NCBI GenBank assembly: GCA_977016875.1
Contig: CDRNST010000051.1
Coordinates: forward strand, 3,038,001-3,102,000
Origin: Pavona decussata
Lineage: Eukaryota
Direction of reading: 5' to 3'
DNA length: 64,000 nucleotides
The notes under the pieces are model-generated. The model was not told where the DNA came from. It saw nothing but the letters and a program-made list of their open reading frames with translations, and searched no databases. Made by a program: the position numbers and the translations under genes. Shown here in pieces: positions 2,526-51,655 of the stretch (within the stretch, counting starts at the first letter, position 1; every line of letters begins with the position of its first letter).

Positions 2526-3269
2526 ATGGAAGAACTCAACAGTGATAGCTCAGAACTGTCTTCGAGCAAACAGAGAAAGGAGCCCTGCCTGGGGTCCAAG
2601 GCAGAGCGTTTAAAGCCTCCACACTCTTACATTGCACTCATCGCAACCGCGATTTTAAATTCGCCGGGGAAGAAGATGACACTGACAGAGATCAACGAGT
2701 ATTTGGTACAGAACTATGCTTTCTTCAGAGGCCCGTACCAAGGATGGAAGAATTCTGTGCGTCATAATCTGTCGTTCAACAAGTGTTTCGTGAAGATTCT
2801 GCGCGACCCTGCGCGACCGTGGGGCAAGGACAATTACTGGACAGTTAGCTCACTGCACGATTATCTGCTGGCCGATGGGACATTCAGAAGAAGACGGAGA
2901 AGAAAACCCAAAAGAAAGGAGGAGAGAGAGGAGTTAAGTCGCAGCTTGATCGCAGAGCAGATTGTGCCGCGCAACACCATGAGAGAAATTGGCGTTCATG
3001 ACGCGCGAAGAAACATTCTAATGTTGCCCACCTCTTACGAAACAGTCAGAGCGCGGCCTAACGCGGTGCACGCCGCTCGAATATCTTCGACGCCCAAACC
3101 GTTTCATGGATCGTTTTCTATTGAAAGTATTCTGGCGGACGAAAAGACGAGAGCTAAGGAGGTTGCGCGTGCGAGGAGAGGGAGTGGAACATTTCCTGTT
3201 ACAACTGTCCTTAATCCAAACATTGGTATGTTCAATAGCAAGTTTAGATTTCCGGTGTTTGGTTTTTAA
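2526..3269 (+). CDS. FoxQ1: Forkhead box transcription factor, FoxQ1 class (paralog a), single exon, 247 aa
   Basis: Complete forkhead domain [10 protein letters not shown]...[18 protein letters not shown] with the FoxQ1-diagnostic wing-1 [13 protein letters not shown] and wing-2 ADGTFRRRRRR (human FOXQ1 has [13 protein letters not shown]...ADGVFRRRRKR). C-terminal eh1 motif FSIESIL at 3114-3134. Confidence 0.93.
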   Translation: MEELNSDSSELSSSKQRKEPCLGSKAERLKPPHSYIALIATAILNSPGKKMTLTEINEYLVQNYAFFRGPYQGWKNSVRHNLSFNKCFVKILRDPARPWGKDNYWTVSSLHDYLLADGTFRRRRRRKPKRKEEREELSRSLIAEQIVPRNTMREIGVHDARRNILMLPTSYETVRARPNAVHAARISSTPKPFHGSFSIESILADEKTRAKEVARARRGSGTFPVTTVLNPNIGMFNSKFRFPVFGF

Positions 3270-3454
3270 TTTACTATATAGCCTTAAATCAAATCATGAG
3301 CACGCTGAGGTATTTATGAGGGGTATGACTGCGACGTGACTAAGTCAAAAAGCATGAACGATCAAAGTGACAGCGCATGTGACCACTGGCAAGCGTTTCA
3401 TCAAAAGCCGCATTACACACAACAACACACTGAGTAAACATTATTTACGCAAGA

Positions 3455-3460
3455 AATAAA
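3455..3460 (+). terminator. Putative polyadenylation signal of FoxQ1a
   Basis: First AATAAA after the stop codon, about 190 nt downstream. Confidence 0.45.
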
Positions 3461-5154
3461 CGGTCCCAATTTATCGTAAACTTATACAAATCACAAAGTA
3501 GTTTAATTCATTAACAAGGCATCGTCAGTATAATTACATACGCAGTACTAAATTACACTCACCTATCTTCGTGCAGGTTTAGAAGGTCTCGTGGGGAGGA
3601 CTACAGGGTTTACTCGCCATTTTTTTCTCAATTTCGAGCTGAAAACTACAACTTGCATAGAACTCACTTGACCTTGTTTATTATTCTCTTTCCGCTTGTA
3701 AACTCGAGTGAAGGTGGTCCACTTGTTGCTGCTCAGTGGATTGGCCATTAAAACAATGCAAACGTTCATCGCGAGACAAAATCTTTTCACGCTTTAATAT
3801 TTCTCACACTTTAGCGACCTTGCTCGCTTGACAGTCAAACCACAGGTCGTTTTTGGTTTATGTTTCACGCACTATGATCAATAACCAAGGTGCTAAACGT
3901 TTTGTTGTCAGCTAAGGATTCTTCTCTAAACCAGCGACATACGGCCAAGTGAAAGATACCTCAGGAAATATAGTGTCCGTTCTCGATTGACCCAATGCAA
4001 TAAGAAAGCAAGTCAAGGCCTTCAGATAATTTGGCTAATAAAAATTCTGAGTCGTGAACAATTCATTAGATTCGACTTTTTTTATTTCGATTGGGGTGCA
4101 TATTTGAGATCAAAACCACAGCCGTGAATCCGTGAGTACAAATGCAGAAATCCCAACCAAATGAATCAATAACTACCTCTTACACTTTAGCAAGGCGGTT
4201 GGCAAGTTACCACTTATGAGTTATCACAAAGTTACCAGAGGAAAAACACCCAAAACCTCTCGAGGGCCAAATCCGTCCTGCTATAAGTTAACTGGTTACA
4301 AAGTTGCGCAAATACTGAAGCTATAATATAAAGGAAGAAGCAAGAAGCGGCTAAAAGAGACTTTGGCAATGGAAATCTCCAGTCTTGACCAATATCACAT
4401 TATAGACTTTGAGGTTAGGAAAAAGGGTGCGGTGAGAGTAACCAGACCAGATGAAGTGTTTATACATCGAAAGTCCAAACATTTAACCTTAAAATAAACT
4501 GAATTCTCTTAGACTGATGACTGAACGCTCACAGCAGTGTCTTCAGGAGCTAACTGTGCGGATCAGAGTATCAGACTTGTTAAACGTTAACAATTGTGTT
4601 CAACTTACCAACAGAACGAGAGTTAATCGTGAAACAACTACTTCGAGAAGTCAAATCTACGTTGCTTAATCTCGACGGATTGCAGTTTTCTGTCGTATTT
4701 ACAACAAAACGTAATCGTCTTTGGTAAAAAGGCTCGAATTTCTGCGATTGAACGAGATGTATACAACAGCCTATCACCACGAACGTGACTCCTGAAGTCG
4801 TGCGTATTTTTCAAGAAGGTTCTTCAGCATCTGCCGCTACCCAGCGAGATCTCTTACAATACTTAGTACTTTTAATTTCTTCTTTTCACGACAACCGACT
4901 GCTATTAAACTCAGCTTTTAATTTATCCTTTCAAAACCTGCATTAAACAAATCTAAGTGCATTAGGTACCAACACATGCAAGTAATCTTAAGTCATCTAC
5001 CCTCCACGCTCGAGCATTTACCCAAAGGAACCATTTTTCAGTTTATAATGCAACTGCGTTTACATTGATTACAATTAAGGGTTTTCTAGATAGTTTGCTT
5101 GTAACAGCAACCACTACAAACTGGAAAGATTTTAAGCGTAAGAACTCCATTATT

Positions 5155-5525: not shown

Positions 5526-8109
5526 GTAAATCAGTGTGAATAATTGCTCTCAGACTGGCTTGTTCTTGACGACTTGTAATCAAAAAAGAACAACGAAACT
5601 GACTCTCTTATAAATCGGGTGGTCTAGCCAGCTTAAATCGAAATTATAACCCTACGATAAAGCTGTGTAGTTATAACTCAGATAAAAAAACGCACGTGTG
5701 CTGAGCCTAATGCAAGGCGCACATTTGGGACCTACGGTTTCCAACCATCACGAAGGCCCAAATGACAAGGTCGAATTTCTCCGCCTCAATAAGCGAGAAA
5801 CACGTTACTGATCAACTCAACTATTAATTACTCTCCCTGATCATTCCTTTTACGTTAATCAAGACTTATTCCTCATCTGTGTTCGCAAAAGTAAACTGGA
5901 ATGTAATCTATTTTTGTTTCTTCTCGATCAGGGTCAAGAAGTATCGTCCATTGCTGCCACCCTGCTCGAGCAGAAGCCCAGGTTCCTTTCCCGAGGGCAG
6001 AACACTTATGCACGCCCATGGCTCCGAACACATTCGCCTCCAGTGGATGTGAACTGTGGAATGCTTCTTGCCACTGCTGTCACTCGTGTGCTGCCTCGAC
6101 GCATTTTCATGCTTGTTACTAGCGGATGCAAAGGGGATTGAGTAACGTCAAAGAAATAGTACATTTATTTACAAACTCTGAAGTTCACCTTCAAAGTTTC
6201 CCATGTGCACTTACTGTACAGAGTTAGAAAGAGAAGCAAAAATTCATACAATGACTCTGTGGCCATCCAATATATTGAATCTCAAAGAAATTTGGTTCAG
6301 TGAAAGTTTTATGGATACTTTGTAAAAATACAAACTTTGCAATTTTGTATTTTTTGGCAAGCACCTCCGTAACGTTCAGTATCTTTCACGGTCAGTGCAC
6401 GGTATTAAAAACGGTCACTTTTTCAGTTAAGGAGTTCCTATCAATATAACAAGTTTTGCCTCTAAGAATTAACGTGCTAAACCTTTGAGTCAGTTCTTTT
6501 TGGTTCATGGGATTTATGTACATTCTGTAAATAATCGTGTCCTTTGATTTTGTATGAACATATACTGAAGGGCTGCAAACAAGTGTTAGCTTTAGCGCGC
6601 GTCCACCTCACAGATACTAGTCGACCTTCATCTCGATCAGAAAGAAAATAGAGGCAAAAATTTTCTAAACGCTACCATCACAGACTCAACAGTTACTGAA
6701 AGCCATATTAACTGATTATTAAAACATTTCACTTTGGAAGTAAAAGGGAAACGCCTTTAATACTTCAGGGTTCCTCGGCTGTTGGTTGGCCGGAATTAAA
6801 GAGTTCTTTAAACGGAAAAGGAATCGACATGTTTACCCTGAGGACAATGAAATTCAGAGAGAAAGCTGAGCTTGTACAGTAAATGCCAGACAAAATCTTG
6901 TAATTTTTAAAGTTACAAATAATCTCACCTTGGAATAATTTTAGGCTCGATAGTATTAAAATACAGTACAAATACATTGTTTTAGTATCACTGAGTCATG
7001 TTGTCGAGCGACCGCACGAACAGTAATGTAATCCGCCCCATTTCCAAAGAGACGATCGTAGTGTCTGGCTTAACATTGTAACCATTGCATAAAGTTTTTG
7101 CTACTATATGTTAAAATTCTTTTGATACGCTTATAAATCATTTGTGACACGATAACGAATATTTCAAATCATGCAAATTCATTGCGTGTATCAAAAGAAA
7201 GAATTCATTCGTGAAAATTTCAGGCATGCCACCAGATAAGAACTTCGTCTAGTGCACTCAATACGTTCACGACAATTTTCTAGCAGTTAAGATATTTCAG
7301 TAAGAAACAGAAAACGCCAAAAACTGGAGTATTCTACAGTCCAGAAATTGTTTTCTTTACATAACTTCTAAATATTCATCCAATTAATTAATTAAGGGCG
7401 TTGTCATCAAAACTTGTTTTCTCGAGCAAATATTCCCTTTCTGGAGCGTTCAGGTCCTTTGGAAAATTTAGATACACCTAAGAACTTTACCAACGCAAAC
7501 AGGACTGCATAGATGACTAGGCTACCGTCTAGCACTTTACTTCACCACTTATGCAATGTATTTAGTGTTACCAGTTTCAAAGAAGACATGACGGGTCTTT
7601 ATGGAACTGGTAGTACATGTAAAATGTGAGATTTACATCAGTTGAAAGGTTTGTTGATTATATAAACAAACAAACACAAGCAAAAACAATATTGTGTCAC
7701 TGGAAATTACATGTTGTGATATGATATGTCATTCAGTAGACATTGAGTAATCTATTTGGGACCGAAAAAGAAAAGAAGAAGAAGTTATTTGTTTCAAAGT
7801 CATGTATTGATCTGCACAGATTGTGCACTTTGTTTAGGCGTTTCTTTTGATGATTGTAAGTAATTTAAGGCAGTAAAACCTCGTTTTTACTTGGTCCTAA
7901 ACAATGAGTCAATCCAAAGTTTAGTTCAACATTAAGAGCCTCTCCTCGTGTAAGTCGGAAGAATTAAAGGGCCATGTTCTTAATACAAGGGTTCTAAATC
8001 CATTTAGTTGTTGTCTTTAAGAGGATTAGCACCCTCTTCGTGGTTTATCTTTGAAAAAAGTAACATTGCACACGGGCCGGCACGGCAAGCAACCCCTTCG
8101 ACTCAGTCA

Positions 8110-8310: not shown

Positions 8311-11300
8311 CATCTAATGGATGATAATAACAACCTCTCAGAAATTGAAATCAAGTAGTAACGCGTTGTTGCACAGTGTGGTCACTACAGGATCACATTA
8401 TTCGGAGAGGTGTAAATCTAATTTTAGGTCCAAAGAAATCGGTCAAAATCCAATCAAGACAAGAAAGGCTCTTAAAATTCACTTTTTCGTAATATCGGCC
8501 TCGTGAATAGGGTTTTTTTTTACATTACGGACCCCTTTTTGTTTTGCATCCTAGATTTCTGGTCCCTGATTTCGCCAAAATTGCACATTTCAATCCCTAT
8601 TTCCTCGAAATTCACATCTCGTGCTTTGGGCCAGATCCTTGGCCTGCTAAAACCCAACCCACCAATCCGGATCCCTGCTCCCACATACCCCGCTCCGCCC
8701 CTAGTTGTGACCCTGAGATTTCAGTGCTTGATTTCCAAAGCATGGCGTTGTTCATTCCATTACTACGAAAATACAACAGCTTTCAATTGCCACTGAATCC
8801 ATGTCTACCAACAATATGTAATATACTGTAGCGGGTATACACAAAATGTTACTGATTAGACTTAGAAAAGTTGTGCTTTTCTCAGTTCTAAGCGTGTTGA
8901 CGGGTAAGCGTAGCTCAACAATTTATTTATAAGAGGCCCTCATGCAAGGGTTATATACTTTATGAATGCCTCAAGTATGAAGATAAAACTGAAAAAAACC
9001 ATCGCTTCACCATTTTTCTTCTCAACGTTCATACTTTGATCAGAGGCTTGGACTAAAGCCGGTCTGAACGCTGCGATACGAAATACAATTCATAGCATGC
9101 TTGTTTGCTTTATATTTTGGAAAGAGGAGGCAATTTGCGGGATTTGAAATTCTGTATTAATACTATTGGTCCCTACTGAAAACTGGTACGAACAACGCTA
9201 GAGAAAGTTTCATTTGAGGGTTACCTTGTACGAAAATCACGGCGTAATTTTTTGGTTTTCATTTTTCTCGACCACATATTCAGCATTTCAAGCCTACTTT
9301 TACTTGTGTAAATATTCTAATTAAAGCATGGCCTCTCCTGTAAGTCTCGGTGATCAAGGTACAATTAGATGGATCAACGGATAACGCAGTCATTCACAAC
9401 ATTCAAACTTCACGTCCCCTGATATCGCCGGGCGAGCAGATGGTGATCATATGTCATCTGTTCTTGTCAGCGAGGATTATTCCCTGCTTCTCTTTATCTT
9501 TCGTCCACATACTTCACTAGCAGACGAACATGCAAATTGCTATGTGTGGTCTACCAGCCAAACAAAGCGCGAGATCCGAGCTTTTCCTTCGGACAACGCA
9601 ACAGATTCCGCCATTCCTTCGATGGAGGGCATAAATTACCTGCACACACGTCGAGAAAACCTTCGCCTAAACATATGGCACAAAAGATTTTAAACATGAA
9701 GATAAGATCTTCCAAAGGGTCTTTATGAAGGCTCCATTAGGTCTCGCTCGGTGAAAATCGCTTGATATCAACGTTCTATCACGCAAATTAATTTTCTGAC
9801 AGCAAAAGGTCAAAAGCTTGGAGCACCGGTGTTGTTTGATGATCGTCTGCTCGCTATGGAAGCGATAAGTCGGTTGATAAGTCGATAATTGATGTTTTCA
9901 AGGTATTTTTGGAGCAATATAGTAAGGGAGGTGGGGGTGGGTGGTTAGCAAGGGGTTAAAACGTAACGGAAAGAACTGAAGCCAGTAAAGACGAAAATTT
10001 TCGACCGTTTGCTTTAGGGAACATATTGCACAATATGTTTCTCGAGAAATCCATCAATAAGAACAGGATGATAATAGAATAGGGACTGTTGGATCGTGAC
10101 CAGTGATATACGCGGCTAATCTTCCATTATTATTATAATCTGACTAAATAGTTATTTTGAACATTGTGAAAAGCTGCATAAATGGTAAGGGTGGACACTA
10201 TTGCAGTCTTAAGAATCGAAGTCGACTGCTAGTACATGTAACCTAGTGTATTTCAGAGATTTTTATAGAGATACTGGAGCGTGCGAGAGGCGTGAATTGA
10301 CCACGCCAGCGCCCAATCATAACGGTGGCTCGCAGGCAATAAGAAATTTCCCTTGCAGCGACCACTCTCTTCAACAACTTATCTCCACAGTTCAGCGACC
10401 CTCTTAATGAAATGACGCCGTTTGAATCAGTTCTCACTCAAACACTATTCAGAATCAATCGTAAGCGATCATCTCCCAAAGTGATCGCAACCAAGTAAAT
10501 CGCGTTTGAATAAGGTACTTCCGACAATCTATCATAAGCCACCATCTATTTTTCTCTGCTCTGGCGCTGTGATCGCTAACAAGAGATTTACTGAATTAAC
10601 TGTATCTTTTTTGCCTACCCTATTTGAGACGGACCAGAAGTACATAACAAGATTCTTCTTACGTATTTGTGTTGAGACAAAGCTGCACCTTATTTCAATC
10701 CAAAGAGTAAAACAAATCATACTGTGAAGACAAAATGGCTGACTCGGAGGCCTATTGGCGCTGTACACACCTGTGTACTAAATATAGGGGAGTACAGAGT
10801 AAACAGCTCGGGTTAACTGCCATCTATGAACAAATAACGGATTTCCTCCCTAATATGGTATTAACGGAAGAGTTTTCCCAAAAATATGGTAATTATGTGG
10901 CTATTTAAAAGTCCTGGGAATATCAATGTTGGACTCCAGATAGTGTAACATCATAAAGGCAATTAAATCGGTCCCTTCCAGATGCCGTGTCAAAGAGGGT
11001 TCACTTTATGATACTGAGAGAGCAATGCCGAGGGAAATCAAAGATAGCTTGAAACCCCGTCCAATCCCGAATACGTCCGTTTTTATATTAAACGCTATAG
11101 TGCTATGTGGACTTAAGGATGGGCCGTTTTGGTCCGAAATAGAAGGAAAGTGTTCGGACTTAGGTCTGAAACAGCATTGAGATTTCCAGCTCAAACAAAA
11201 AATAACTTACACCCAGGAAAACCTGTAGGGCGTCTGTAGAAGGGTTTTGGGATATCAGGTAATTCTCGGGATGATTTAAGGGGTAGATTTCCCAACAAGA

Positions 11301-14106: not shown

Positions 14107-14137
<31 letters not shown>

Positions 14138-15025: not shown

Positions 15026-15108
15026 GGTCTGAAAAGGTAATCAGAAAATTACATATAACGGTCTGAAATAGAGTCAGGGCTTGGAGAACCGAGCTGCACA
15101 TTCTAACC

Positions 15109-21600: not shown

Positions 21601-22158
21601 AATAAATTTTGTCATATATAAAACGGCATACAAACTGAGCATTAATTAACAAAAACAGGAAGTATTACCGAACAGTATTCTGTTTGAGAGTCCTTACTAG
21701 AACTGTTTTGGTAAGTACACACGGAAGAGATGCATTCATTACCTTTGACTCTAGGCATTGTCTACAATTCAATGAAATCTCTTCATCCTAAAAAGCGAAA
21801 GCAAACATGTATTACGCACTGCTGGGGATAAAGAGGCTAATTGTTAATAATTATTAACACAACAACGCTATAACACCTTCAGTGAAGATGATAAATCATT
21901 TGCTAGACCTATCAAACTCTACCTGTCAATGTTTTTAAAGCTTTTGATTAAAGACAGTTTTCTATACGGCCCACCTTAGAGGTCAGAAAAAAAAAAATGA
22001 TTATCTGGAGGCACAGTGAAACCACAGCTTTAGAACAATTTTACAGAAAGGATTAGTGTAATGACACACATTAGCGGACGAATTAAGAGGCTTAGAGTTT
22101 CATTATACACTTACGGTTTATTTTCTAAACACAGAGAGTGTGTAAACTCAGCGTGTTT

Positions 22159-22296
22159 TTAATTAAACTTGGTGGGTGGTGCACGGGTTATTTTCTGTCG
22201 GACAGTTTCCTGTGTTTTGTGCAATAACAAGAGCATAAAAGCGTCATTTGTGTATTGTAACAACACTATAAACAAGCTGCTTGATCCTCTTAGTTT
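22159..22296 (+). promoter_or_regulatory. Putative core promoter of FoxQ1b
   Basis: TATAAA at 22267-22272 (overlapping a Fox-type TAAACA), Inr-like TTAGTT about 25 nt downstream, and upstream TTAATT...GTGGGTGGTGC motif shared with FoxQ1a. Confidence 0.5.
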
Positions 22297-22392: not shown

Positions 22393-23106
22393 ATGACTGA
22401 ACGATCGTTGAAGACCAGAAAGACCAGCCGCCGGTCCGCGACAGCTCAACTGAAGCCGCCACATTCGTACATTGCGCTAATATCCACAGCGATTCTCAGC
22501 TCTCCACGAAAGAAGCTCACGCTCACTGAGATCAACAAATACCTTGTGGATAATTATGAGTTCTTCCGAGGGGCTTACCAGGGTTGGAAAAACTCTGTGC
22601 GACACAACCTCTCGTTTAACAAGTGCTTCGTGAAAGTACTCAAGGATCCTTCGCGCCCCTGGGGTAAGGACAATTACTGGACAGTTTTAGTGGATTTATT
22701 GGAAGAATACATAAGAGAGGACGGTTATTTTAGGCGGCGAAGAAAGCGACAGCCTCGAGCAAAAGGAAAAGTTGAGTCATTTCATGGCAAAGAAGGACGC
22801 GACATTCAGCGGGCGCTCCAAGACGCGGACAAAACGAACTTTGCCAATGACCTTGATGTGACTTCCAGTCCAGACTTATATACATCTCAAGAAGTCCAAA
22901 GCAAGGGAAACATCGATCTTAATAGATTTTCTATCGACAGACTACTACAGGTTGAAGACAAAGTACGAAATGACGAAAGATTTGGCCATCAGATGTTTGG
23001 TGCGGGATTCACGAGATTTCAAGGTATGACATCTAAGGGTATAAAGCAATTATCAACCTTGAAGGACATAATTGAATTATCCCCTTTGCAGACATTTTCA
23101 CGGTGA
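22393..23106 (+). CDS. FoxQ1: Forkhead box transcription factor, FoxQ1 class (paralog b), single exon, 237 aa
   Basis: Forkhead domain with [13 protein letters not shown] and [10 protein letters not shown]. 68 of 79 residues identical to paralog a from LKPP to YWTV (manual count). eh1-like FSIDRLL at 22927-22947. Confidence 0.92.
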
Positions 23107-24877: not shown

Positions 24878-25087
24878 ATGAACTCCAAAACATTTCTGAT
24901 TATCAACACGATGCTCAAGACAGAAGACGCAGTCCCTTCATTTTCCAGTCCCAAGCGCAAGAGCAGACCACGCCCTTCGGTCCGCCATCTTGGATTCGTA
25001 CGGACTCGCCTTATCAAGGAACACCGTTTCTTCCTTGTGTTCCCAGACGTCAGAGTGCCGCACGTCACTATTACATCTGACTCTTAA
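24878..25087 (+). CDS. Candidate 69-aa microprotein of unknown function
   Basis: True ATG with A at -3, TATATAG at 24771, possible 60-nt 5'UTR intron 24800-24859, basic SPKRKSRPR segment and C-terminal PHVTIT. No homology recognised. Confidence 0.3.
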   Translation: MNSKTFLIINTMLKTEDAVPSFSSPKRKSRPRPSVRHLGFVRTRLIKEHRFFLVFPDVRVPHVTITSDS

Positions 25088-32519: not shown

Positions 32520-32556
32520 TAACAATAGTAATTAATAATAATTTTTTATTTATTTT

Positions 32557-32587
<31 letters not shown>

Positions 32588-32600
32588 TAATAATAATAAT
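31948..32600 (+). mobile_element. 3' remnant of R4/Dong-clade non-LTR retrotransposon ending in (TAA)n
   Basis: AIEKEGKKVQKYAALA / TLWKMKFLKITAVVIGPFG / IKTSMLLGKARIPRREVGI* resemble the REL-endonuclease C-terminus (EKExEKxxKY..LW..VVIGALG..LLGTARILR). A short 3'UTR and TAA tail follow. Interrupted near 32110-32270. Confidence 0.7.
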
Positions 32601-32701
32601 AATGAAGAGGGGCAAGGTATGTTCATGAGCAGGCATTTGTTTGCCAGATACCCCGGATGTGAGGGCCGCAGTTTATACTGTGTAACATGTGTATAGTAGT
32701 A

Positions 32702-32733
<32 letters not shown>

Positions 32734-32745
32734 TATAATAATAAT
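32448..32745. repeat. Two (TAA)n microsatellites within a local tandem duplication
   Basis: (TAA)n at about 32448-32602 and 32703-32745, each preceded by atgtgtatagt and followed by about 70 bp gaggggcaaggtatg..catgagcaggcatttg.ttgccagataccc..gagggccg.agttt. Confidence 0.95.
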
Positions 32746-32967
32746 GATGGAGAGGCAAGGTATGCACATGAGCAGGCATTTGCTTGCCAGATACCCAGGT
32801 GATAAGAGGGCCGTAGTTTCTACAATAGTTCATATGGTAGCTCAAAGTTTGGTGTACGGGGAATTGTACTTTTATAATAGAAAAAAGCCGCGATCATAAT
32901 GGTATGTATAATTTGCTTTGATTTCTTTTGTATTTGAGGGCAATTCAGTTATGAAAGGTTGCTTATA

Positions 32968-38850: not shown

Positions 38851-41800
38851 GTCCACATGCTGTGTGACTGCAACCGTTATATTGTGACTACTTAGGCTGA
38901 ATACTACCTTCTAGTATTTGGTTCGAACTGTCTTAACACCAACTGAATTCTCTTTCAAGCATTAATTGGGGGTGCGGTGGTTAACTTTCACCAGCTTGGT
39001 GATACAAGTCCTCTACGGTTCGTGCCGCCATTATTTTGTTTCCCGCTAGACAAAACCCTTTGCTTCACTTTATCCGGCCTCAACTCTTCACTCTGGTTTA
39101 TCGAATTGTTATAGCCGTTAAGATACCTTAAAGTGCCCTTTATTGGGGGGAACTAGCATCTCATTCAGGAGTAAGAACTTATATGCTCAATCAATAATTC
39201 TAGACAAAATGACTGGTTCCATTATGACCATTATAACGGACATGTTCGATACTACAGCCGGTTTGGTGCCGGCGTTAGCTGATGTCATTTTCATTAACTC
39301 TTTTGTCAGAAAACTTCAGGGCGTCCGCAATATAGAGGTGTCCCAGTTCACAAGAGAGAAGCTGAGTGCTGGTCCTGTATAAGCCAGTGGAGACTAATTC
39401 ATGGTAATTGAGTATATAAAACAAGGATTTTAAGCTATAGTCGAACAAAAGAAAGACGCTCTCATAAGCCCTCACTAAACCAAACCCACCAGTACGTATT
39501 TGAAAGAGGTCTCATAGAAATTCTACATGTTGAAATGATAGCGCAGCTCTAAGATATTTTTTAGCCTAGGAATGTTTTGCTACACAGAAGGGCAAATCTT
39601 TTTATGGAAAGGAATTCGACGTATTCTGATATTTCAGCACCCTTTTAGCTTGACCCTTTCAGTTATCCCCCCCAACCTTGTCTACGTCTGTGACAACTGC
39701 GTCAGAGCACTTCATTGCAATACAAACAGTTCAAAGTACGCGGTCGATAACTGCAGGTAACAGGAGATACCAGCTAACGACGCTATTCAAGGCTAAACCA
39801 CTGCTGCGTGCCAGATTTTCATCGAATCTAAGCCGCAAAGTTGTGGAAAGTTCTACGTACGAGGTAGAAACAAAAAAAGTAAAATGCGCAGAAAAATTAA
39901 AGAACTGCTCAAACTATCAATTGCACCAGAACTAAAATTATCGGTGGCGTTAATTATACCCCGGATGGAATTTTGGAATGGAATTAAAGTACACACTCAC
40001 TGCAGCTTGTTTGTATCCCACATGAAAGTTAGCCTGGAAGTTACATAAAGAGAGAAAAAGTTGGCACAAATTGAGGAACTTTGTATTTTCTGGTCGTGAT
40101 GGGTTTAAAATCCAACTTTAACCTGCATTGTAGATATGCAGTAGGCAGGTGCAGATTATCCAGCAATCCGACTTAACCCCTTTAAAGCCCCATTTTCAAC
40201 AAGCATATTCTGCTTGCTGTTGGACATATTCAGTTTTATGGTGCCAAATGAAAGAATTTGTTTATTCATCACGACATTCATTACCGATCTTTACTTTTCT
40301 TCTCATGAACTGCACGTCAAGTATTGAAAATGAAGGGAAACGTTAGACGCTGGCCACTTCTGGGGCTCCTTTTGGCAAATGTTTCCAAGTGCCACAACAC
40401 CTTCGGAACCCAACAAAGCCAATAGGCACATAGAAAGTCATATTCTATTTGTAAAATTGGTCCCTGTACTAACAACATTGTATATACTAGTTGTGAAGTT
40501 TTAAGAACTTTTCTGTGTGTATTTAGGGTTTTCGTACGCAAAGAAGTATCGGTAAATGTACCACCAGTCGCCATTTTTTTCGATACAGTGGATTATGTTC
40601 CTTTAGCCAGAAGAGTCAAGCCGATAGCATTTTTGCGAGCAGCTGGACAATTTTCAAAACATAGACAACTACAAAAGAAAATAATGCACGTTAAGTAGGC
40701 AATATATCCATGAGTGGCGTAATCTTAGTTATGTCGATCTGAAAATCCTTAAAAAATAACCCCCTTTATGTTTTTATAACTTTTGTTAAGACAACGTTCG
40801 TAGGATTATTTAGCCACTAAAAATATTTATCTACGCTCGCTCGAGCGTTAAATACTCGTCTGATTTAAATGGAATTTAGAACAATAGCTTTAAGCCTAAG
40901 AAAAAACTGTCATGGATTACAAAACAGACCTTGCGTTTTAAAACCATCATTGAAATGGATTGCAAATATTTATTTGAAAACATTTAATTTGCGCTTGGCT
41001 CGCAAATTCAAAACGTCCCAATTTGCAAGGTTAATTTCGAGCACTCGGTGTCGTAATCGACTATCACTGGCAAGAAAAGATGATGACATTTTTTTGTAGC
41101 CCCGAAACTGTGTTGTTATGTGCACCAAATTTTTGTACTTAAATTAAAGATGTGTATGGCAGTCAATACGCGAACCACATACTGAAACTGGCGTTAGTGA
41201 GGAATAAATAAATGGTTTGCGTTAAAGTTGAATGTGTCCCTTCTCAAACTTACGCCCTTTTACAGCTTCCTGTGATTCAATTGAAGTCGTCAGGGGATAC
41301 AGAAAACTGTTCATTAAAAGTGATAAAATGTTGAAGTGGCCGGAGGAGGAGGGACACTGCTTTTGGTTTGAGCTTGCGAAATAAAGTTATCGAAATTTCA
41401 CTGTTAGTACTGATTCTGTTTTACTATCCACTCTAGTTTAGCATGAGACGAATCCAGTTCAAACACGCTGACCAAGCCCCAACAAATCTAATGACTGAAT
41501 AGAAAAGTCGTAGCCGAAGCCTGCAGAGACACAGACGTACAATTTTTCCGTGAACAGAGCTCGGCCGGGAACACGTAGGAGTGCTAGCACTCCTAACTTG
41601 TACTTGGTATAATTTTACAAGAAGGAATTCAGTACACTCATGTCAGCAACTTTCACAGTTTGACACACATAACAATCACTCCAATACGCCCACGACTCTT
41701 CTGTAAATGTGTCAGTAGTTTTTTCATCAAGGGAGTCTACCACACCCTTAAATGGGATCCACGTGAGAGGTATCCATCAGTTCAAGTGTTGACGGTGTGA

Positions 41801-44800
41801 GGGGGTGTTCTGCAAGAATCCGGAAATAGCTCATCATGCTCTAGCCACGAGTTCTCACCGAGCTAAAATAGATGGTTTTTAAACTTCCTATTATGGTTGC
41901 CGAGAGCAAGATAGGTGTTGGCTGTAATGATGGCGAAGCAAGAATTAAGCGAGGGGTGGGTCTCTTTTCAAAAGATTTAGCTCTTTTATAATGGCTTAAT
42001 TAAACCGGCATTCAATGTAGAACGGACATGACACAAGTGTATTCAAGCTAAAGCTTTTGACCAGCTACTTTTCTGTGGTTCTGTTTATTGTGTTGTAAGG
42101 TAGGTCGGACTTTTGAGAAGGGGTAAAATCCAATAGGGCATAGGGTGACCATTCAGTTGGAAGCTAACAAGTTGTAGTATTGCGTGAATATCCTGGACAG
42201 CAAATTTGTCCTCTCCTGCTCTTCTGTGCAGGAACAAAAAACATATTCAATGGCTAAAAAAGTTTTCTTAGTATTTTAAAGTAGGATTGCAGAAATTTTC
42301 GTGGCAGAATAGTTACATTCACTGTCTAAATTTCGTGGCATAGAGAAATTACTTTGCGCTCAATTAGTGAAGCTTAAATAAGCCGGTAAAACGTCTGATA
42401 GAAAGATAAAAGCTATCAGGCAAGGAATTTAGAAGTACCACATAACTGAGTCAACTGAAGTGATTCCAAGATATCTTTTTGATGAAGCCTTCTACCGCTC
42501 GCTATCAAACACCTTTATTAAAACGATCTAAACACTTGCCCTTGAACTGCAGCTGTTGCAAGAGAAGTCAGGTATTGACGCAAATGATCGTAAATCGCCT
42601 TAGCGTTTGACGCGAATGGGTAAGACGTGAAGTGAGCAGCACTCTCAACTCACAAAGATAAGAGATCAAGAGATCGAGGGCGGATGCGATAAACATCACC
42701 AGCCGATCTTTCAGCTTTTGAAAAGCGGCCTTTTAAAACGTTGAAATGGGTGCGCAGATGTGTTAAAAGTAACAGATGATAGAGTGTTTTGTGTTCGATT
42801 GCTTCCTGTGTCCGTTAAGCCGCACGTGGAGCTTTTATTCCATTACACGACCCAACTGGAAATGTGGGCACGGCAAAAGCTGTGCGCACATGTTTTCAGA
42901 TCAACATAATGGCGCCTCGCTTAAAAACCCTGTTCTGTGTTCTGATCTTAATGTAACACGTGTTCAAAGAATAAGGAACCACCGAGATTTTATGGGCAGC
43001 CATTGTGATAACGCTGTACCACACAATGGAGTTGAGTGACATTTGATATTCTCCAAGGCTCCAAGAGAGGCATTTTGCTTGTTTTCTTTGCGAGGAAACC
43101 GTATCTGCATCTAGAGTTACCTTCGTGAAAGGCTAATTTGTCAAAGGATTTAAACCCTAATTGATGCGTTAGCCGTAACCTTTGGCCTGCTTTTGTGTTT
43201 GTATGACTAATAGTCAATTACATCGGAGGGTGATACTTAACGCCCCAAGACATCCTTTTTTGCCATTAAACGTCCCATAACTTTTTACTTTACAAAACCA
43301 GTGAAGGGTGCAGCAAATCGGGACAATTGAGTAAGTAAAAGAAATACATCGAAATATGCTGGTTACTAATAAGTCACTGCAAATGAAGATAGCAAGCAGC
43401 TATCGCAATTCACCAGCGTTATCTCATAGACTGGTTTTGGCGCAAGCCGAACCATTTACTTGCTCCTAATGCGAATGCCACCCACCAAACAAAGATAACA
43501 ACCCCAGCCGTACAGTAATTGTTCGAACATCCGCCGGTTCCCTCCTTTAATATCGAGAAGTAATTTTACCTAAATAAAATTGTAAACGGCGATGAATAAA
43601 ACAAGATGCGCGCGGTTGAACGTGTCAGCGGTCAACTACTAAGTGAGGATTTGTCTAAGACGATGCGAGAATTTAGCTTTTGCCATCGATTTTATCTCGG
43701 AAGGTCTAGAACAGGTTGAAGCAAGCGCAGCAATTTTCGAGCCAGAAATAACTACTGCATCTTTCATCTGCCAGATTAATTGCTGGCGGTTTTCTGGACG
43801 CTGTTACGAGCTGTCATCTGCGTGTAATCGTATAGCTTTAATTATGACCACAAGACAGAGGAACGCGTTCCATGTATCGCGAAAACTAATTTTGCGTTAT
43901 GTTTTCTTGACTGAAAGACAGCTTGAGCCAACTTACAGTAGGAGGTCTCTCAAAAGGTGTTTATAAGCTTAACGGCAATCGCGCGAACTTTCGCAGTTAC
44001 AAATATTTTTTAACTCACAATTGACAACAAATTGTGTAAATGAGTAATGAAGTGTTTCCTGAATGGTAAACGATGGTTGATACAACCGAAAATGAAATAA
44101 AAGAGCACTGATTAGTTTAAAATTTGGAAAAAGAATAGTTCTTAGTCCTCGACTTACGCTAACACCGAGAAAACAACAGCCAAATGGATGCGTTCTTACG
44201 TCTTCTACTTAGCAATGAGGGCTGTTTATTATCACAAAAACTTTAGCCATCGAAGTAATTAAGAGCAATTAGGGACACTTCTAATAGCTACACACAGAAC
44301 AGGAAACAAGACCTTCGCGAAAGGCATCGTAAACTCCTCGAGAGCGAAAACTCCTTGTCGAGATTCTCTTCACTGATCTTATTTGACAACGAGCAAAATA
44401 GATATCGGGGTGCTAAGTTGGTTATACTGTTTTTGTAGCACTTTGAGTCATGTTTGCTTAACAAATAAACTTGGCACAAATCCTGTCCGTTCGGTTTTCC
44501 CAACTTGACACTGTCATATCTTGATGCCGTATACAAACCAACAGTGATGTTTGGACGCGGGAAAAGATCGGGTTTGAAACGAAGCATTCGCAAGTACCAA
44601 TTTTTATCGCGCCGACAAAAACAGTTAGCAAAGATCAATTAGTTAAACACCGACAATTTTCCAACTCATTACTAGGAGGAGCCGACAACTTTGGAAGCAC
44701 AATGTGTTCTGCGAGGCGCGACGTTATCTCAAAATATGTATCTAATCTACCCGTTTACAGCGACCGGACGACAGGCCCGCATTAACTGCGGCGGATAACA

Positions 44801-46064
44801 AAACGCAGGCACTAGCTGGCAAGGCGACTAACCGTGACAAAACCGGGAGCTTTCCGAATAAATTTAGCCGAGGTAAGCTGGTTACAAAAAGACTTTTCAA
44901 AGATTTTCATTGTTCTTTAAATCATCCTTGAACTGGATCCCTCACAGGCCACGATAACAAAGCATAGTTAACACCAAGAGCAGAAAGTTGACTTCAGTAA
45001 TAAAAAGTCTCCTAATATCTAGTTCACTTTAGCTTGCTTTTTCACGTATTCTACCAACAAAAAGGAGAGATTATGTATTTTACTGCTCAGAATATAATTT
45101 TGGTAAATGTGCAGAAAAATATTCTGTGTGGTCAGTTCAAACGATGAATATAATGCAATGGGATGATTCAAATCCTTCAAATTCCTAAAGGGGATGACTT
45201 CAGATTATTCGCAGCCATTAACTTCTTACAGGTTAAAAATGTCCCCGGGTTCCTTAAGATGAATTCCACAAAACTGAATCATCGGTAACAACAAAAGATT
45301 TTTTAATGGACTGAAGCTTTTCATTTTCTGAAATACTATAGCAACGACTTTTTAATTAACTCCGACGGCGAAATTTTGAACTATGACGCAAACACTAGGA
45401 CCTTGATTTGTGTTTGTACTTCTTTTGATTTTGTCGGCAAAACTATCTCCGCAGCGTTTAAATTTTACAATGTATCAATTAAATGCCAAAACGAAAACAC
45501 TTAGAGGAAATGCACGATTCAGTTAACTGTTTGATATCAGTAAATACGGTTTCAGTCAAAACGTTATAAAAAGAACCTGATGGAATTCTATAAGTCTATT
45601 AGATATAAATCTATCCCTATCATGGTAAATTAAGTCGAGACGAAAGAATTTCCTAAGATAAAAAAAATTCGAAGAGCCTTGATAACTACAAACCAACACC
45701 GCAATAATAAAAAGTACTGAGGATAAGTTATAAATAGTCTATTTCAAGAATTCTCTCACAGGCGCAGTTGTAGGTACGTGGCCGATGTGTATTGCAACTC
45801 ACTGGTTTATTTGCTTATTCTCAAATAAAGAATTGCATTCACCCATTACTTATGTCTCCAGTCTTCCTTTACGTTGAAAGTAAAACCACAGACGGCTCGC
45901 TCCGAGAAGGAGATATTTATTGACTTCTGCTGGAGTTTTTGTGCTTTAAAATTTTCAGTTGTGCACTTCTAGAGTTCAATTTCGACTCAAATATTGCGTC
46001 GGTTGTCGATATCCAGCTAACTGGAGTTTTGGCCGGGTAAAATTCAAAGTGTCAACATTGAAAT

Positions 46065-46720
46065 GAAGTCTGTACAAGGTGCTTTTAACACTTGAACCTT
46101 TTGATGAAATCCTAATAAAATGAGACTGAGGTACCTTATTGAACACTACTATCCTCTGGTGCTGTTTAGTAACCTGTGCGAGGTCAGTTCCAACGCATCC
46201 CCTATAGCTGAAATTTAAAAGAGTCAAACTGACTAGTCAGTGGTACTTTCCTGTAATATTGTTTACTACGCTATTACGCTGTACAAGGTCGTTCTAACTT
46301 CTGAGCAAACTCCAAAAGTGTGAGCAGTGCAGCAAACGAAAATTATTCGGCTTCATGCACTTTCCCGAATGACTGCCGAAATGTGCTGCTCAAGCCAGGC
46401 TCGGCTGGTTCTAACTATTGATTATGTGAGTAAAATACCTAAGTGTTGGCCCATTCAAATGGAAGCCACTTAGCAGTACTTTTCTCCGATGCCGGTTGTT
46501 CTTCGATATTTTGAAAATTGACATTTTTTGTTTGGTGTTACTTGTAAGCTTGAGCTCCCTTTGAGAAGAAAGGGTTACTGACTCCAAGAATAAGACGTGT
46601 ACTACGAGTTGATCGTATGTTTCTATCTCAGGGTTTAGTCTTTGCGTGAAATCCTTTAAGGGCCATCACTAGATTTAAATTGAAGCCACTGAGTTGTGCT
46701 TTCATTCAGTAGTGTATTCA
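46065..46720 (+). repeat. Decayed array of a roughly 90-bp satellite-like repeat
   Basis: Recurring ctgtacaaggt, gttctaact, tgaaatcct, ccattcaaatg.aagc and agtacttt. Single units also at about 21465-21510 (minus), 23815-23920 and 42040-42175. Confidence 0.6.
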
Positions 46721-49245
46721 GACATTATGATGAGGTGAAGGTTAAAAAGTTGAAAAGAGAATCCGCCACTTCAGATGAGTGTCGACCCAGTAAAGAACAC
46801 TGAACAATTTCAGTGAAATTAGCTCGAAAACATGTAATGAATTCAGATCAAAGAAATACCACAATAGATTGTGTGGCACCGTTTCAGAAGATTTTCGCAA
46901 GCAAGATATAGATATGACGCATGTATTGAACTATCACGAGTTGTGAACTGAGGAAGTACAAATATTTAACATTTCCCGGGGTAAAACAACAACCTCAATG
47001 AGAGTACAGTTTATCAACAATTTCTTTTATCACGAAGAAAACGTTATTCTAGTTATTTAATATTGTCGGCGCTGTGTTGTGTTCAAAACCTGAAAACAAC
47101 TATAACTTGAAGATATCAGTTCGGAATCCAAGTCCTTCTTGCAGTGTATAACATCAGTAGATAAGTCACTCAAAATCAGGCGCTCTTGTCCAAATCGCAA
47201 TGTATACTAGTCCCCTTGAGAACCTAGAAAGAAATTCCAAGAGCTTTTTCGAGTCCTTTGGATCGCCATTTGGAGAAGGCAAAATTCAGGGAAACTGGAC
47301 GTAACTGAGTAAATTAAAGAACTGATTTATTTACAAAAGGAATGAATTAAGTTTGTGGTCTAGATGTGTGACTTGACACGTAAAGGAACCACTTCATCTT
47401 AGTTGATGCATCGATGGACTGTCGTAGAATTTAGCACCACAGTCTGAATTTCTCGAAATCTCGGGTCTCGTTTCAAACAAGTTAAGATCAGGAAAAACCG
47501 TTAAGCAGGATTTTGGGTCGCGACGAAGGATTACAGCAACTTACAGACGAACAAGACCGATTTGAACGTGAGCCCAGGGAGTGGCACGAACATGCAGAAA
47601 CGTCAAATCACTCCAGCCCTTTAAATTGGCACGTAGCAATGGCCTAATCATGAAATAACATTTTATTTTCATAAATACACGCTAACAAACTGTACAAAGT
47701 ACTGTTCAATGGCCGCTTTATTTCACACGGTCACACAACAGGGTTTCGACCAGACTCAAACTTCGAAATAAAATTGACTTGACCCTGGCATTGAAGGGGC
47801 TAAATAGTCAAATACGATGATTATAAAATACAAACGCTTTGTATAAAGCAACTTGTTTCTCTCTGTCTTATTTCAATGAATGAATTAAGATATAACGGGA
47901 TTCTACTTCTACAGGCTACATATGTCGTGTGGTCTATTTGCGCTATTTTGACGTTTCTTTAGAAACATATATGGTTGTCTTTAATCTTACTTAGTCCTGT
48001 GAGGTTTCCAAGCTTGAATTACAGACGTGAGCACAATTAAAATGTAGTACAGAATACCCAAAAGTTCACATATTCCATTCCCTTAAGACGTTATCGATAA
48101 AGAAATGAATACAATCTCAGAACGGAGATTCAGTTGGAGAGAGCATATCCGTTCCTTGAGGAAAAAATAATAAACACAATCTGACCACTTCCCCATGTAC
48201 TTCCTTCGCTGGTAATGTTTCCATGGAAGTTCTAAAAACGACTAAATGAACATACATGCGCTTCGCAGTGTGAAACACGCATAATCTGTTCCTGAATTGA
48301 CGACTACAACTGTGGCGAAACAGATTTCACACGCGCAAAATAGGTACTCAAGTCCCGCACGATGATAAACAAACGTTGAAGTTTAGCCTTATTCAAGTTT
48401 TCACCGACTTGAATCTCGAGGTTGAAATCAATAAAGAAATGGTATGGCGGTAGTGGCGAGAAGTCATTATCGAGAAAATGGGTGCAGTTGTTTTGCGTAA
48501 ATGATCGGAAGATTTGAAGTCAAAGTTGTCTGCGTTATCTATCTTCTGATGCCTCCCCACCCTACCGTTACGATGCCAAGATTTCGTAGCAAAAGAACAA
48601 AAAGAAATATATCATTCTCAATCTAAAGTTTCTAAACGAGCTCTAGCGTTCCAATGTGGAAGCAATCAAATATCTTGGTTTGCCGCAAGATATTGTTGAT
48701 GAAAAGTTTGGCCGCCTTATCAAGACTTCAGCAAGTGGTTAAGGGCACGCGTCCCATTACGACCACACCGAGCGCAGCGCGATTACGAAAACTAACAAAG
48801 GCTTTTTTTCTCTCACTGCTGTTTCTTGCGTGAATGTTTTTCACCCCAAAATTCAAAAGGAATTGCCCCTTCCTGTTGCTTAGTTGCGATACAGAGACAC
48901 GAACTATAGGATTACAGTAGAGGTGAAACCAATAAAGAGATCTAACTGCGACTTTAAGCTTTTAATTCCGTTGTTGGGGACTTGTGGAATTTCTCACGAT
49001 TTCCCCCTCGGATTCCTACCTCGTTGCTGGCGCCAAGATACTCTTCGCTGGTTGAATTATTCGAAAAACCCTTAGTTGCTCTTATGGAGTTAAGGTTTCA
49101 AGGGTTGGAACAACTTGGGGAGATAAGGGCACAGGTCTGAATCTGACCTAAAATGGTGCGTGATTGCATAGCTAATCCAACCAGTTCATGCACTTCGGGC
49201 GAAAACCTAACAAACTCCACATGACGATCATCGAATCTTTGAGAA

Positions 49246-49251
49246 TTTATT
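49246..49251 (-). terminator. Putative polyadenylation signal of FoxC
   Basis: First minus-strand AATAAA I found downstream of the stop, implying a 3'UTR of about 1 kb. Confidence 0.35.
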
Positions 49252-50212
49252 GTGTAAAAAACTTTATGTAAATCAGGCACAACTAGTCTGCTAAGTGGTG
49301 CGAAAAACGTGGGAATAAAAACACCAGCACGTTCACGTACACAATGTCTAATTTGTCGTTTAAAAATTTAATCGCTTTTGCCTTTTCTTGGGATTTTATA
49401 CAAGAATAAATCAGCTTGGAAAATACAGCTCTACATCATTAAATATCGAAAAATCTTTGAACTGTTTGTACACTTAGTCCTAAGCGCTAATTTACATGGC
49501 CTTTCCTATGCTTGCTCTCAATAACAATCACAACCATAATTGCTGGTTTAAGTTTGATTAGAAAACAAAGCCGTCTTTGGAACGAGATTTTTAACAACAC
49601 CTTCGCATTGACTGACTACTTTACGATTTGCATGGGTTTTGAGACTTATTTTTGCCAAAATTGAAAACACAGATAAATTAAAACCACTTATTGCGTGCTG
49701 TTTTTCGTGACTGGATTGCGGTCTGTAAAAGCGGGTTTGATGACGAGCTATTTAGCCAGGTACGACTAGTTATTCTCTCATACTGCGAGCACGGTGGGTG
49801 ACACAGAAACACTTGTGGTGAGCGAGTTGAATGAAAACAATGGTTGTTGCCCTTAAGCCTCACTAAAAACAAACTTCACCGGTACACAAATCAACTGTCA
49901 AACTACTTGGCGCTAAAAACGAAACTTCGAAATTACTGGGGGAAAAGACCAGCGCTTAGTATACTTACTATAATTGTTCAGAATTTTGATAATATCTCCT
50001 CAGTTATCAGCTATTCTAAATAACATCTCGCCTACAATAATCTTTCTTTTTTTGCACACATCTGTCCTGAGTGTTCAGCCCAACTTGGCAAACTGTACAA
50101 AAAAGCTAAGCAGCTTTGTAAAAAAGTTTCCGTTCCTTAAAGAGATGTGCTAAACCTCAAGGTGTCCTGTATCAGTTAAGCATGACTACTCTTAACTGTG
50201 TTCAAAGACTGA

Positions 50213-51655
50213 TCATAGAGTGTACTGAGGCACTGGCGCCGCAGCTGCGTGATAAGAGGCACTAGTACTCCCAAACTGACCTTGACTTGCTTGCATGGTC
50301 GGTACAGCAGCTTGCCCACCGGGAGCGATCAGTCGCTGCGACTCAAACATCTCGCGCACATTCGGGAAGCAGTTGGTGTGAGCGCTGGTAACCGGTGGCT
50401 CACTGCCTGAGTAGCTTGAAGAAGAGTACCACTGCGCGGGTCTGGATGCTGTGGGTTCATACTCGGCTGTGTATTGCGAGTGATGTTGGCGGTGCACGGG
50501 TACGTCTTCTACGTGCGGATTCTGGGTGGCTTGCTGATTGTAGTGACTCAAATGGGGTGAATATCGGCCAGGGACCATAGGCGGGTGCTCGGAACTCATC
50601 TGAGTTTCGTACCGGTGAACGTAAGCCCTTCCATTGGGCGTGTTAGTACTGGCGTAGGAGGGCGAGTGGCAAACTGCATATGGTGTGCCAGAGTAGTTGC
50701 CACTGCCTTGTTGCCCGTTTTGCGGATAAGAGGGGTAGTTTAACGTGTAAGCGTTCTCGTAAATAGTACACGGTGGAACCGTGGGGAAGGATGGCGGCGT
50801 GGTAGCGCCTTGATTTTCGCTGATTTCACCAGGTGAATTACTTGATTGTATCTCACTGTCCTCGGAGCTTACCATGCACTCTCGCTTGCAGGACGGTGGG
50901 CTGGCCTTCGAGGTGGGCACTTTATTCTCTGATTTTGAGGACTCTAGAGATTCGGAGCGTGCGGTTTGCGTGCTAGCTGATAGCGTTTCACGCTCTTTAG
51001 CTTTTTCTTGCGGAACGGAAGTTGTTGTTGGGCTTTCAGAGCTTGTTGTCTTTGTGTCGGCGGAAGTGTTGTGGTCCTTTTTGTCTTGGATCTCGGCGCT
51101 GTTGCTGTTCTCTGATAGCGCCTTGTCCTTCTTTCTGAAGCGCTTTCTCCTTCGCAGGTAGCTTCCATTTTCGAACATGTTCAAACTCTCGGGATCAAGA
51201 CTCCAGAAGCTTCCTTTGCCAGGCTTCTTATCGTCTCTTGGCACTTTTACGAAACACTCATTGAGAGAGAGATTATGCCGAATCGAGTTCTGCCAGCCTT
51301 GTTTATTCTCCCTATAGTACGGAAATCTGTCCATGATGAATTGATATATTCCGCTTAGTGTTATTTTCTTCTCTGGCGCGCTCTGTATAGCCATGGCAAT
51401 GAGCGCAATGTACGAATACGGCGGCTTGACCATCTCATGTCTCTGATGTGGTACATGTTGAGCTCGCGGGATAGGAGGATAAAGGCGATCTTGCCTCGTT
51501 TGATACTGTCCGTGTGCGGGATACACGGGGAAATGAACTGAAGAATAAGGGGACGCACCGGCTCGGTAAAATTCGTAGCCTTGATTTCCATACATTGGCG
51601 TTATCATGTTGCTGTTAGCGGCAGCCGAGTTAGTAGGATAAGGGTACATGGACAT
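50213..51655 (-). CDS. FoxC: Forkhead box transcription factor FoxC, single exon, 480 aa from the first ATG
   Basis: [104 protein letters not shown] is nearly identical to the FOXC1/2 forkhead domain. FoxC C-terminal motif VREMFESQR is present. The ORF track starts at a GTG (51658); the first ATG is at 51655. Confidence 0.96.

Follow-up and report, generated by a model that had tools for sequence, protein, structure and literature searches.

The FoxQ1-FoxF-FoxC-FoxL1 cluster has been described in insects, chordates and spiralians (PMC9539403, PMC8918179, citing Mazet et al. 2006; Shimeld et al. 2010a,b), and the spans quoted for such Fox clusters range from 20 to 300 kb (PMC7859237). In human the gene order is FOXQ1-FOXF2-FOXC1-GMDS, with FOXC1 elements lying within GMDS introns (PMC9597995), and foxc1b-gmds has been shown to be an ancient microsyntenic pair (Irimia et al. 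2012, PMC3514665). A clear FoxF is not known from cnidarians (PMC9269926). Here we describe a 64,000-nucleotide stretch of coral genomic DNA, hereafter the window, in which two FoxQ1 genes and one FoxC gene lie within 49 kb, with a GMDS gene close by on the same contig. The window is C51:3,038,001-3,102,000, where C51 is a contig of 5.70 Mb in an assembly of 602 Mb and 1180 contigs; positions given without a contig prefix are window coordinates. Taken as a whole, the locus is very likely a conserved, ancient Fox neighbourhood in a scleractinian coral.

The coral locus resembles the bilaterian cluster in that FoxQ1 and FoxC lie within tens of kilobases of each other and that this is conserved across related genomes. 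Its span of 49 kb, about 0.008% of the genome, also falls within the quoted 20-300 kb range. It differs in having two FoxQ1 copies, a convergent orientation and neither FoxF nor FoxL1 on C51, and its lineage is cnidarian, whereas in the literature we searched the cluster is described for bilaterians only. The resemblance to the vertebrate FOXC1-GMDS regulatory block is that GMDS lies near the Fox cluster in the coral as well. In contrast to that block, the coral GMDS does not adjoin FoxC but lies beyond FoxQ1, from which a Cupin_8 gene separates it.

Three forkhead genes within 49 kb

A first, sequence-only reading of the window had placed three forkhead genes here, and open reading frames (ORFs) with Pfam Forkhead matches lie precisely where it put them. 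FoxQ1a (gene A) has an ORF at 2526-3269 (+) of 247 amino acids (Forkhead E 1e-29), FoxQ1b (gene B) has an ORF at 22393-23106 (+) of 237 amino acids (E 1e-29), and FoxC (gene C) has an ORF at 50213-51658 (-) with E 1.5e-40, whose true ATG is at 51655. Scanning the whole 602 Mb, we found 43 forkhead matches, and just three of them, the window genes, are on C51, with no further Fox gene within about 2.6 Mb on either side of the cluster. Since these three are all found within 49 kb, the clustering is far beyond chance. For comparison, the chance of any second Fox gene near FoxC is about 0.005 (about 30 genes x 100 kb / 602 Mb).

The same reading had taken the host for a probable cnidarian, perhaps a coral. 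The best named matches are from Desmophyllum, Montipora, Acropora and Stylophora, and by these matches the host is a scleractinian. It probably belongs to the complex clade: in a quick tree of FoxQ1 proteins, the neighbours of FoxQ1a and FoxQ1b are Montipora and Acropora sequences, and not those of Desmophyllum and Stylophora, with Shimodaira-Hasegawa-like approximate likelihood ratio test (SH-aLRT) values of 80 and 88. An exact look-up of the other Fox paralogues of this genome gave a single named record, in which an unlinked FoxL2-like ORF shares one 90% cluster with Montipora.

Conservation of the FoxQ1-FoxC pair in other anthozoans

FoxQ1-FoxC linkage was seen in five further cnidarian assemblies, and it is tight in four of the five. 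In Desmophyllum (MU825883.1), the FoxQ1a orthologue at 1,629,202-1,633,408 (+) and FoxC at 1,679,098-1,680,543 (-) are about 46 kb apart. The coral-like assembly ERZ25071792 has FoxC (+), FoxQ1b (-) and FoxQ1a (-) in a span of 39.7 kb, a mirror image of the window. ERZ26695794, a more distant hexacoral-like assembly whose FoxC is 51% identical, has FoxQ1 (+) and FoxC (-) in convergent orientation at 99 kb. In the octocoral Dendronephthya, FoxC (+) and a Q1-like gene (-) are also convergent, 32 kb apart, and are separated by one gene with a SAM domain and one for an adaptin; no homologues of these two genes were found in the 102 kb around the coral cluster. A tight convergent pair is common to Hexacorallia and Octocorallia, and the linkage that the sequence-only reading had expected to see in related genomes recurs in scleractinians, in another hexacoral and in an octocoral.

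The fifth assembly is that of Nematostella, in which FoxC at about 1.56 Mb (-) and FoxQ1 at about 5.155 Mb (+) are on the same chromosome (OW051997.1, 16.1 Mb) yet 3.6 Mb apart and divergent. Tight FoxQ1-FoxC linkage is thus not universal in Cnidaria, and from the comparison with the other anthozoans the wide spacing in Nematostella looks like a secondary state. Hox and NK genes of sea anemones, the so-called 'clusters', are reportedly dispersed, and the placement of Nematostella FoxC and FoxQ1 on one chromosome at such a distance is similar. The Fox pair is different in that it is still tight in corals and in an octocoral.

We also considered whether the cluster could be an assembly chimera, and excluded this as having a negligible probability. 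Nothing speaks for it. The sole assembly gap, or possibly a mask, is a run of 146 Ns at 61906-62051, and it lies about 10 kb upstream of FoxC and outside the cluster. The gene order recurs in independent assemblies (Desmophyllum and ERZ25071792), and at both ends of the cluster the noncoding sequence runs collinear with that of Desmophyllum.

In the literature we searched, no cnidarian is described as having FoxQ1 and FoxC linked, although an earlier report is possible, notably in Shimeld et al. 2010a,b. The term FoxC has no occurrences in Zimmermann et al. 2023 (PMC10719294).

GMDS and the flanks of the cluster

The sequence-only reading had suggested a search of the flanks for FoxL1, FoxF and GMDS, and GMDS is the one that is present. 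A multi-exon GMDS gene on the plus strand with five exon matches is located on the FoxQ1 side at C51:3,010,371-3,016,659, approximately 21-28 kb to the left of the window start, so that the distance is about 24 kb to FoxQ1a and about 72 kb to FoxC. Two of its exon ORFs match solely GDP-mannose 4,6-dehydratases in the PDB, and the best match of the second is the human enzyme. Between GMDS and the Fox genes there is a Cupin_8/JmjC gene on the minus strand, with exons at C51:3,024,679-3,024,849 and 3,033,051-3,033,227 (window positions about -13,300 to -4,800), which is head-to-head with FoxQ1a and is the left neighbour in Desmophyllum too (L036:1-1300). The gene order on C51 is then GMDS (+), Cupin_8/JmjC (-), FoxQ1a (+), FoxQ1b (+), FoxC (-). 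The conserved synteny of Fox genes and GMDS, that is, of a developmental gene and its bystander, was shown here for this genome only. GMDS is the new addition to the coral Fox cluster, and the most useful one.

The other two genes that were sought did not turn up, as there is no forkhead match on C51 beyond the three window genes. FoxF is absent from between FoxQ1 and FoxC, where the middle gene is FoxQ1-class and carries an eh1 motif, and FoxL1 is absent from beside FoxC and from the rest of the 5.70-Mb contig. We also found no IRF or Sec5 domains on C51, which would correspond to the flanking genes IRF4 and EXOC2 of the human cluster.

Another possibility is that FoxQ1 and FoxC came together separately in the anthozoan and bilaterian lineages, through chance or convergent rearrangement, and several observations speak for it. 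The anthozoan pair is convergent, while the human genes FOXQ1, FOXF2 and FOXC1 presumably all lie on one strand; the position of GMDS is reversed; the coral cluster lacks FoxF and FoxL1; and the comparison consists of anthozoans and bilaterians, with no outgroup. Against this, a given gene would fall within 100 kb of another with a chance of only about 3e-4 in a genome of 602 Mb, the presence of GMDS within 80 kb as a third common neighbour lowers this figure much further, and FoxQ1 and FoxC share a chromosome even in Nematostella. We therefore consider an independent origin very improbable. Because the linkage is shared across anthozoans, in both Hexacorallia and Octocorallia, and because GMDS is a neighbour, the most parsimonious reading of the comparison is that FoxQ1-FoxC linkage is older than Bilateria and predates the cnidarian-bilaterian split, as the sequence-only reading had proposed.

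Assignment of the genes to FoxQ1 and FoxC

For a careful maximum-likelihood tree we combined the forkhead domains of named FoxC and FoxQ1 sequences with those of the genome's 24 intact Fox ORFs, the three window genes among them; this and the quick tree used exon 1 alone. FoxQ1a and FoxQ1b fall in a cnidarian clade (99/100) that is nested in a 100/100 clade with bilaterian FoxQ1. This FoxQ1 clade includes seven bilaterian FoxQ1-like sequences (Xenopus, Sparus, Branchiostoma, Patiria, Asterias, Diadema and Paralvinella), five of which are named FoxQ1 or FoxQ1-like, and it excludes FoxC, one FoxD3, one FoxK and 21 other intact Fox domains of the genome. In the PDB, the best match of both genes is 1kq8 (rat HFH-1/FoxQ1), at 146 bits for FoxQ1a against at most 105 for other classes and at 135 bits for FoxQ1b against at most 103. 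The classes trailing by this margin of 30-40 bits are FoxD3, FoxC2, FoxH1, FoxA, FoxG1 and FoxL2. As controls for this ranking, two other forkheads of the genome received clean labels, L004 as FoxA (245 versus 166 bits) and L005 as FoxD (207 versus 154 bits).

Named matches agree with these assignments. Those of FoxQ1a include Desmophyllum, Montipora and Nematostella 'forkhead box protein Q1' and Dendronephthya 'Q1-like', and among the 120 best matches of each gene the named bilaterian ones are nearly all FoxQ1, with none named FoxF or FoxL1. For FoxQ1b, near-full-length orthologues among named matches come from stony corals alone (Stylophora and Acropora). C-terminal to the forkhead domain, both proteins have an eh1 motif, FSIESIL in FoxQ1a and FSIDRLL in FoxQ1b, in which the F-S-I..L columns are invariant. 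Nearly identical eh1 motifs are listed for sea-urchin, Ciona and amphioxus FoxQ1, while no eh1 is reported for FoxF (Yaklichkin et al., PMC1939712). From these comparisons, both plus-strand genes are FoxQ1-class, as first proposed. An ESM Atlas feature search with FoxQ1b returned FoxL3 and FoxH1 clusters at 0.92-0.94 and was disregarded, since it cannot discriminate between classes.

The minus-strand gene was also correctly called FoxC. It is in a FoxC clade (97/80) with Xenopus, Latimeria, Branchiostoma, Saccoglossus and Euperipatoides FoxC, is sister to Nematostella FoxC (99/93), and its named bilaterian matches are mostly FoxC1, FoxC2 or crocodile. The protein is 84-91% identical to a set of coral proteins without species names, 86% identical to Desmophyllum pertusum OS493_018724, 78% identical to an Acropora cervicornis fragment and 51% identical to Nematostella FoxC.

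A different view of the plus-strand genes is that they are not strict FoxQ1 orthologues and descend instead from a gene ancestral to FoxQ1 and FoxF, or from another class, so that FoxQ1b may be the positional counterpart of FoxF. FoxQ1b does sit between FoxQ1a and FoxC, which is the place of FoxF in vertebrates (PMC9597995), its Acropora orthologue is labelled 'F1-like' by NCBI, no clear FoxF is reported for cnidarians (PMC9269926), and the class tree has no FoxF sequences. In the quick tree, moreover, FoxQ1b-type sequences stand apart from coral FoxQ1a-type sequences; the FoxQ1b-type branch is long, so this placement may be an artefact, and the backbone has no resolution, so the tree gives no date for the FoxQ1a/FoxQ1b duplication. 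However, both genes are nested with bilaterian FoxQ1 at 100/100, the 120 best matches of each hold many FoxQ1 but no bilaterian FoxF-named protein, and FoxQ1b has the eh1 motif that is reported for FoxQ1 and undetected in FoxF (PMC1939712). On balance, we find this view quite unlikely and treat both genes as FoxQ1.

Exon structure of the FoxQ1 genes

All three genes had been read as intronless. This is right for FoxC, which has a single coding exon at 50213-51655 (-) encoding 480 amino acids from the ATG, in line with the single-exon NCBI models of Desmophyllum, Nematostella and Dendronephthya. It is probably not right for either FoxQ1 gene. Spliced NCBI models of the FoxQ1a type from Desmophyllum, Montipora, Nematostella and Dendronephthya have C-termini that are absent from the window ORFs, and so does a spliced FoxQ1b-type model from Acropora. 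Using tblastn, the FoxQ1a-type C-termini are placed at 5916-6119 (P0139 from Desmophyllum, E 8e-17; P0142 from Montipora, E 2e-16), and the FoxQ1b-type C-terminus of Acropora P0203 is placed at 24868-25077 (E 2e-14). Because of this downstream homology and the canonical splice sites that go with it, the FoxQ1 genes probably have two exons each.

FoxQ1a is very probably 2526-3225 joined to 5932-6122 (+), for about 296 amino acids. Its first coding exon holds the forkhead domain (amino acids 30-109) and the eh1-like motif, and the ORF tail crosses a canonical donor, G|GTATGT, at 3226. The predicted second exon is in phase 1, is preceded by a pyrimidine tract and a CAG acceptor, and encodes 62 amino acids and a stop, with a Cys/His-rich tail ending in HACY; it corresponds to the annotated last exon in Desmophyllum (L036:14022-14204). 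FoxQ1b is very probably 22393-23023 joined to 24860-25080 (+), for about 283 amino acids, with the forkhead domain at amino acids 21-98 and the eh1-like motif in the first exon. There the ORF tail crosses a canonical donor, G|GTATGA, at 23024, and the predicted second exon, also in phase 1, follows the pyrimidine-rich acceptor TTTTTATAG| and encodes 72 amino acids and a stop.

Spacers and conserved noncoding DNA

Under the two-exon models, the spacers are 16.3 kb (FoxQ1a to FoxQ1b) and 25.1 kb (FoxQ1b to FoxC). No Pfam family was found in ten spacer and flank ORFs of 99-146 amino acids, which bears out the earlier observation that there is no other recognisable protein gene between the forkheads. 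No gene is annotated in Desmophyllum in the 10 kb that follow the FoxQ1a orthologue, nor in the 10 kb to the left or right of FoxC, and the locus tags leave room for one gene between the two orthologues. The further description of the spacers as gene-poor seems overstated, since lengths of about 16 and 25 kb are not clearly unusual at a genome size of 602 Mb. A trinucleotide repeat at 32555-32845, which on the minus strand reads as poly-Tyr or poly-Leu ORFs, is simple sequence and no gene.

We compared two Desmophyllum loci with 102 kb of the window's contig using blastn. Around FoxC, collinear alignments at 70-84% identity cover about 50% of 21 kb. The sole yardstick for this figure is the surroundings of FoxQ1a and of the Cupin_8 gene, where the aligned fraction is lower, at about 15-20%. 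The FoxQ1b-FoxC spacer, which is downstream of FoxC, holds a collinear series of conserved blocks at 41698-49954 (74-84% identity; for example 42589-44073, 44299-44935 and 47418-47591), and upstream of FoxC there are further collinear blocks at 51923-60135 (69-79% identity; for example 51923-53539, 54138-55933 and 59369-60135). In the FoxQ1a-FoxQ1b spacer, a block at 9434-9913 is 79% identical to Desmophyllum over 481 nt. With tblastx, the conserved blocks match equally in all six frames, while exons of FoxC, FoxQ1 and Cupin_8 stand out in one, so the spacer blocks, 9434-9913 included, are classed as noncoding. Both blocks that were tested, 42589-44073 and 54138-55933, are single-copy in the genome. 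These alignments show what appears to be constrained noncoding DNA in both spacers.

Upstream of FoxQ1a, a candidate promoter-proximal element at 2251-2352 (+) is conserved as far as Nematostella (L032:9729-9822, 71% over 102 nt, E 7e-6) and is also aligned in Desmophyllum. It contains strings that may be binding sites: the forkhead-site-like TGTTTTGTTTA and TGTA[A/T]ACA, a homeobox-type TAATTG, and TGGGTGG, which we take to resemble a Gli/Zic-type site. The stretch upstream of FoxQ1b (22090-22240) aligned only poorly to this element.

The sequence-only reading had suggested that the spacers form a shared regulatory block. The conserved single-copy noncoding blocks are in keeping with regulatory DNA; that it is shared between FoxQ1 and FoxC is conjecture.

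Origin and retention of the neighbourhood

FoxQ1 and FoxC are both clade-I forkheads and probably arose as tandem duplicates before the cnidarian-bilaterian split, and the pair would since have been kept adjacent and convergent in most of the anthozoans sampled. FoxQ1b would be an extra tandem copy of FoxQ1, whose orthologues among named sequences are in stony corals only. Because of the Groucho-binding eh1 motif, both FoxQ1 proteins are most likely repressors. The coral neighbourhood may then be seen as the cnidarian counterpart of the bilaterian FoxQ1-FoxF-FoxC-FoxL1 cluster plus GMDS, minus FoxF and FoxL1. Retention was probably aided by FoxC and FoxQ1 regulatory DNA in the spacers, where the single-copy noncoding blocks are found, and slow rearrangement in anthozoans may account for it partly or wholly.

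Several of the points above weigh against a conserved ancient neighbourhood. The divergent, distant pair in Nematostella and the interrupted pair in Dendronephthya indicate that the constraint on FoxQ1-FoxC adjacency is not absolute. The synteny comparison is confined to anthozoans and bilaterians. GMDS is on the FoxQ1 side in the coral but on the FOXC1 side in human, and in other cnidarians it was not located in the Fox loci, which reach merely 2-10 kb out, so this is no evidence of absence. The missing neutral control for the alignment around FoxC belongs here too, as does the class tree, which is without FoxF, FoxL1, FoxB, FoxE and FoxI references, so that the Q1 label rests on paralogues from the same genome, PDB classes and match lists.

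Slow rearrangement in anthozoans could also be all there is to it, with adjacency kept by inertia alone and no shared or interleaved regulation. The 3.6 Mb between the Nematostella genes, neither of which was lost, fits with this, as do the unrelated genes inside the Dendronephthya pair and a spacing that ranges from 21 to 99 kb. On the other hand, the convergent orientation is kept in five assemblies across Hexacorallia and Octocorallia, single-copy noncoding blocks are conserved with Desmophyllum in both spacers, and the same genes and GMDS are still neighbours in vertebrates (PMC3514665, PMC9597995). We believe that inertia alone has a substantial chance of being the correct explanation, though one somewhat short of even.

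At the other extreme, GMDS-FoxQ1-FoxC could be a regulatory block that predates the cnidarian-bilaterian split, is bound by interleaved enhancers and serves as a 'nursery' in which Fox genes repeatedly arise. FoxF in the bilaterian stem and FoxQ1b independently in corals would then each come from a FoxQ1-like copy between FoxQ1 and FoxC. We regard this as a speculative and rather unlikely extension of the conserved neighbourhood proposed here.

Other forkhead loci in the genome

Elsewhere in the genome, two forkheads 8 kb apart are found at C78:2,399,914-2,408,211 (L005 and L015). One is of the FoxD class, with 207 bits to FoxD3/Genesis, and the other is evolving fast; the two may represent the FoxD-FoxE linkage known from published work. 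At C176:171,960-196,920 there are two forkheads 25 kb apart (L002 and L003) of a class unrepresented in the PDB, with a best match to FoxC2 at about 158 bits. For L003 this is only 4 bits above FoxL2, and for L002 it is 16-17 bits above the next classes (FoxD3 and FoxG1). These two genes are candidates for FoxL1, FoxE or FoxB, and their contig differs from that of the FoxC cluster. Tandem arrays of divergent forkheads are found on C4 (L011-L013, two copies of which have identical forkhead domains), C188 (L023-L025) and C338 (L020 and L021 plus fragments). They form one 100/100 clade and look like a lineage-specific expansion, possibly FoxQ2-like.

Implications for the history of the Fox cluster

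FoxQ1-FoxF-FoxC-FoxL1 is a textbook conserved linkage, which in the literature we searched is treated as bilaterian and associated with the patterning of mesoderm and gut. Any ancestral linkage would be masked in Nematostella, the species that normally stands for cnidarians, by its 3.6 Mb spacing. Because corals and an octocoral keep FoxQ1 and FoxC tight, and at least one coral keeps GMDS, part of this neighbourhood is probably pre-bilaterian, in which case FoxF and FoxL1 would be either later additions or cnidarian losses. Corals would add a new lineage to a kind of conserved gene neighbourhood that is already known, and a compact locus of 50-80 kb with mapped noncoding blocks would make the idea of long-lived regulatory blocks testable outside Bilateria.

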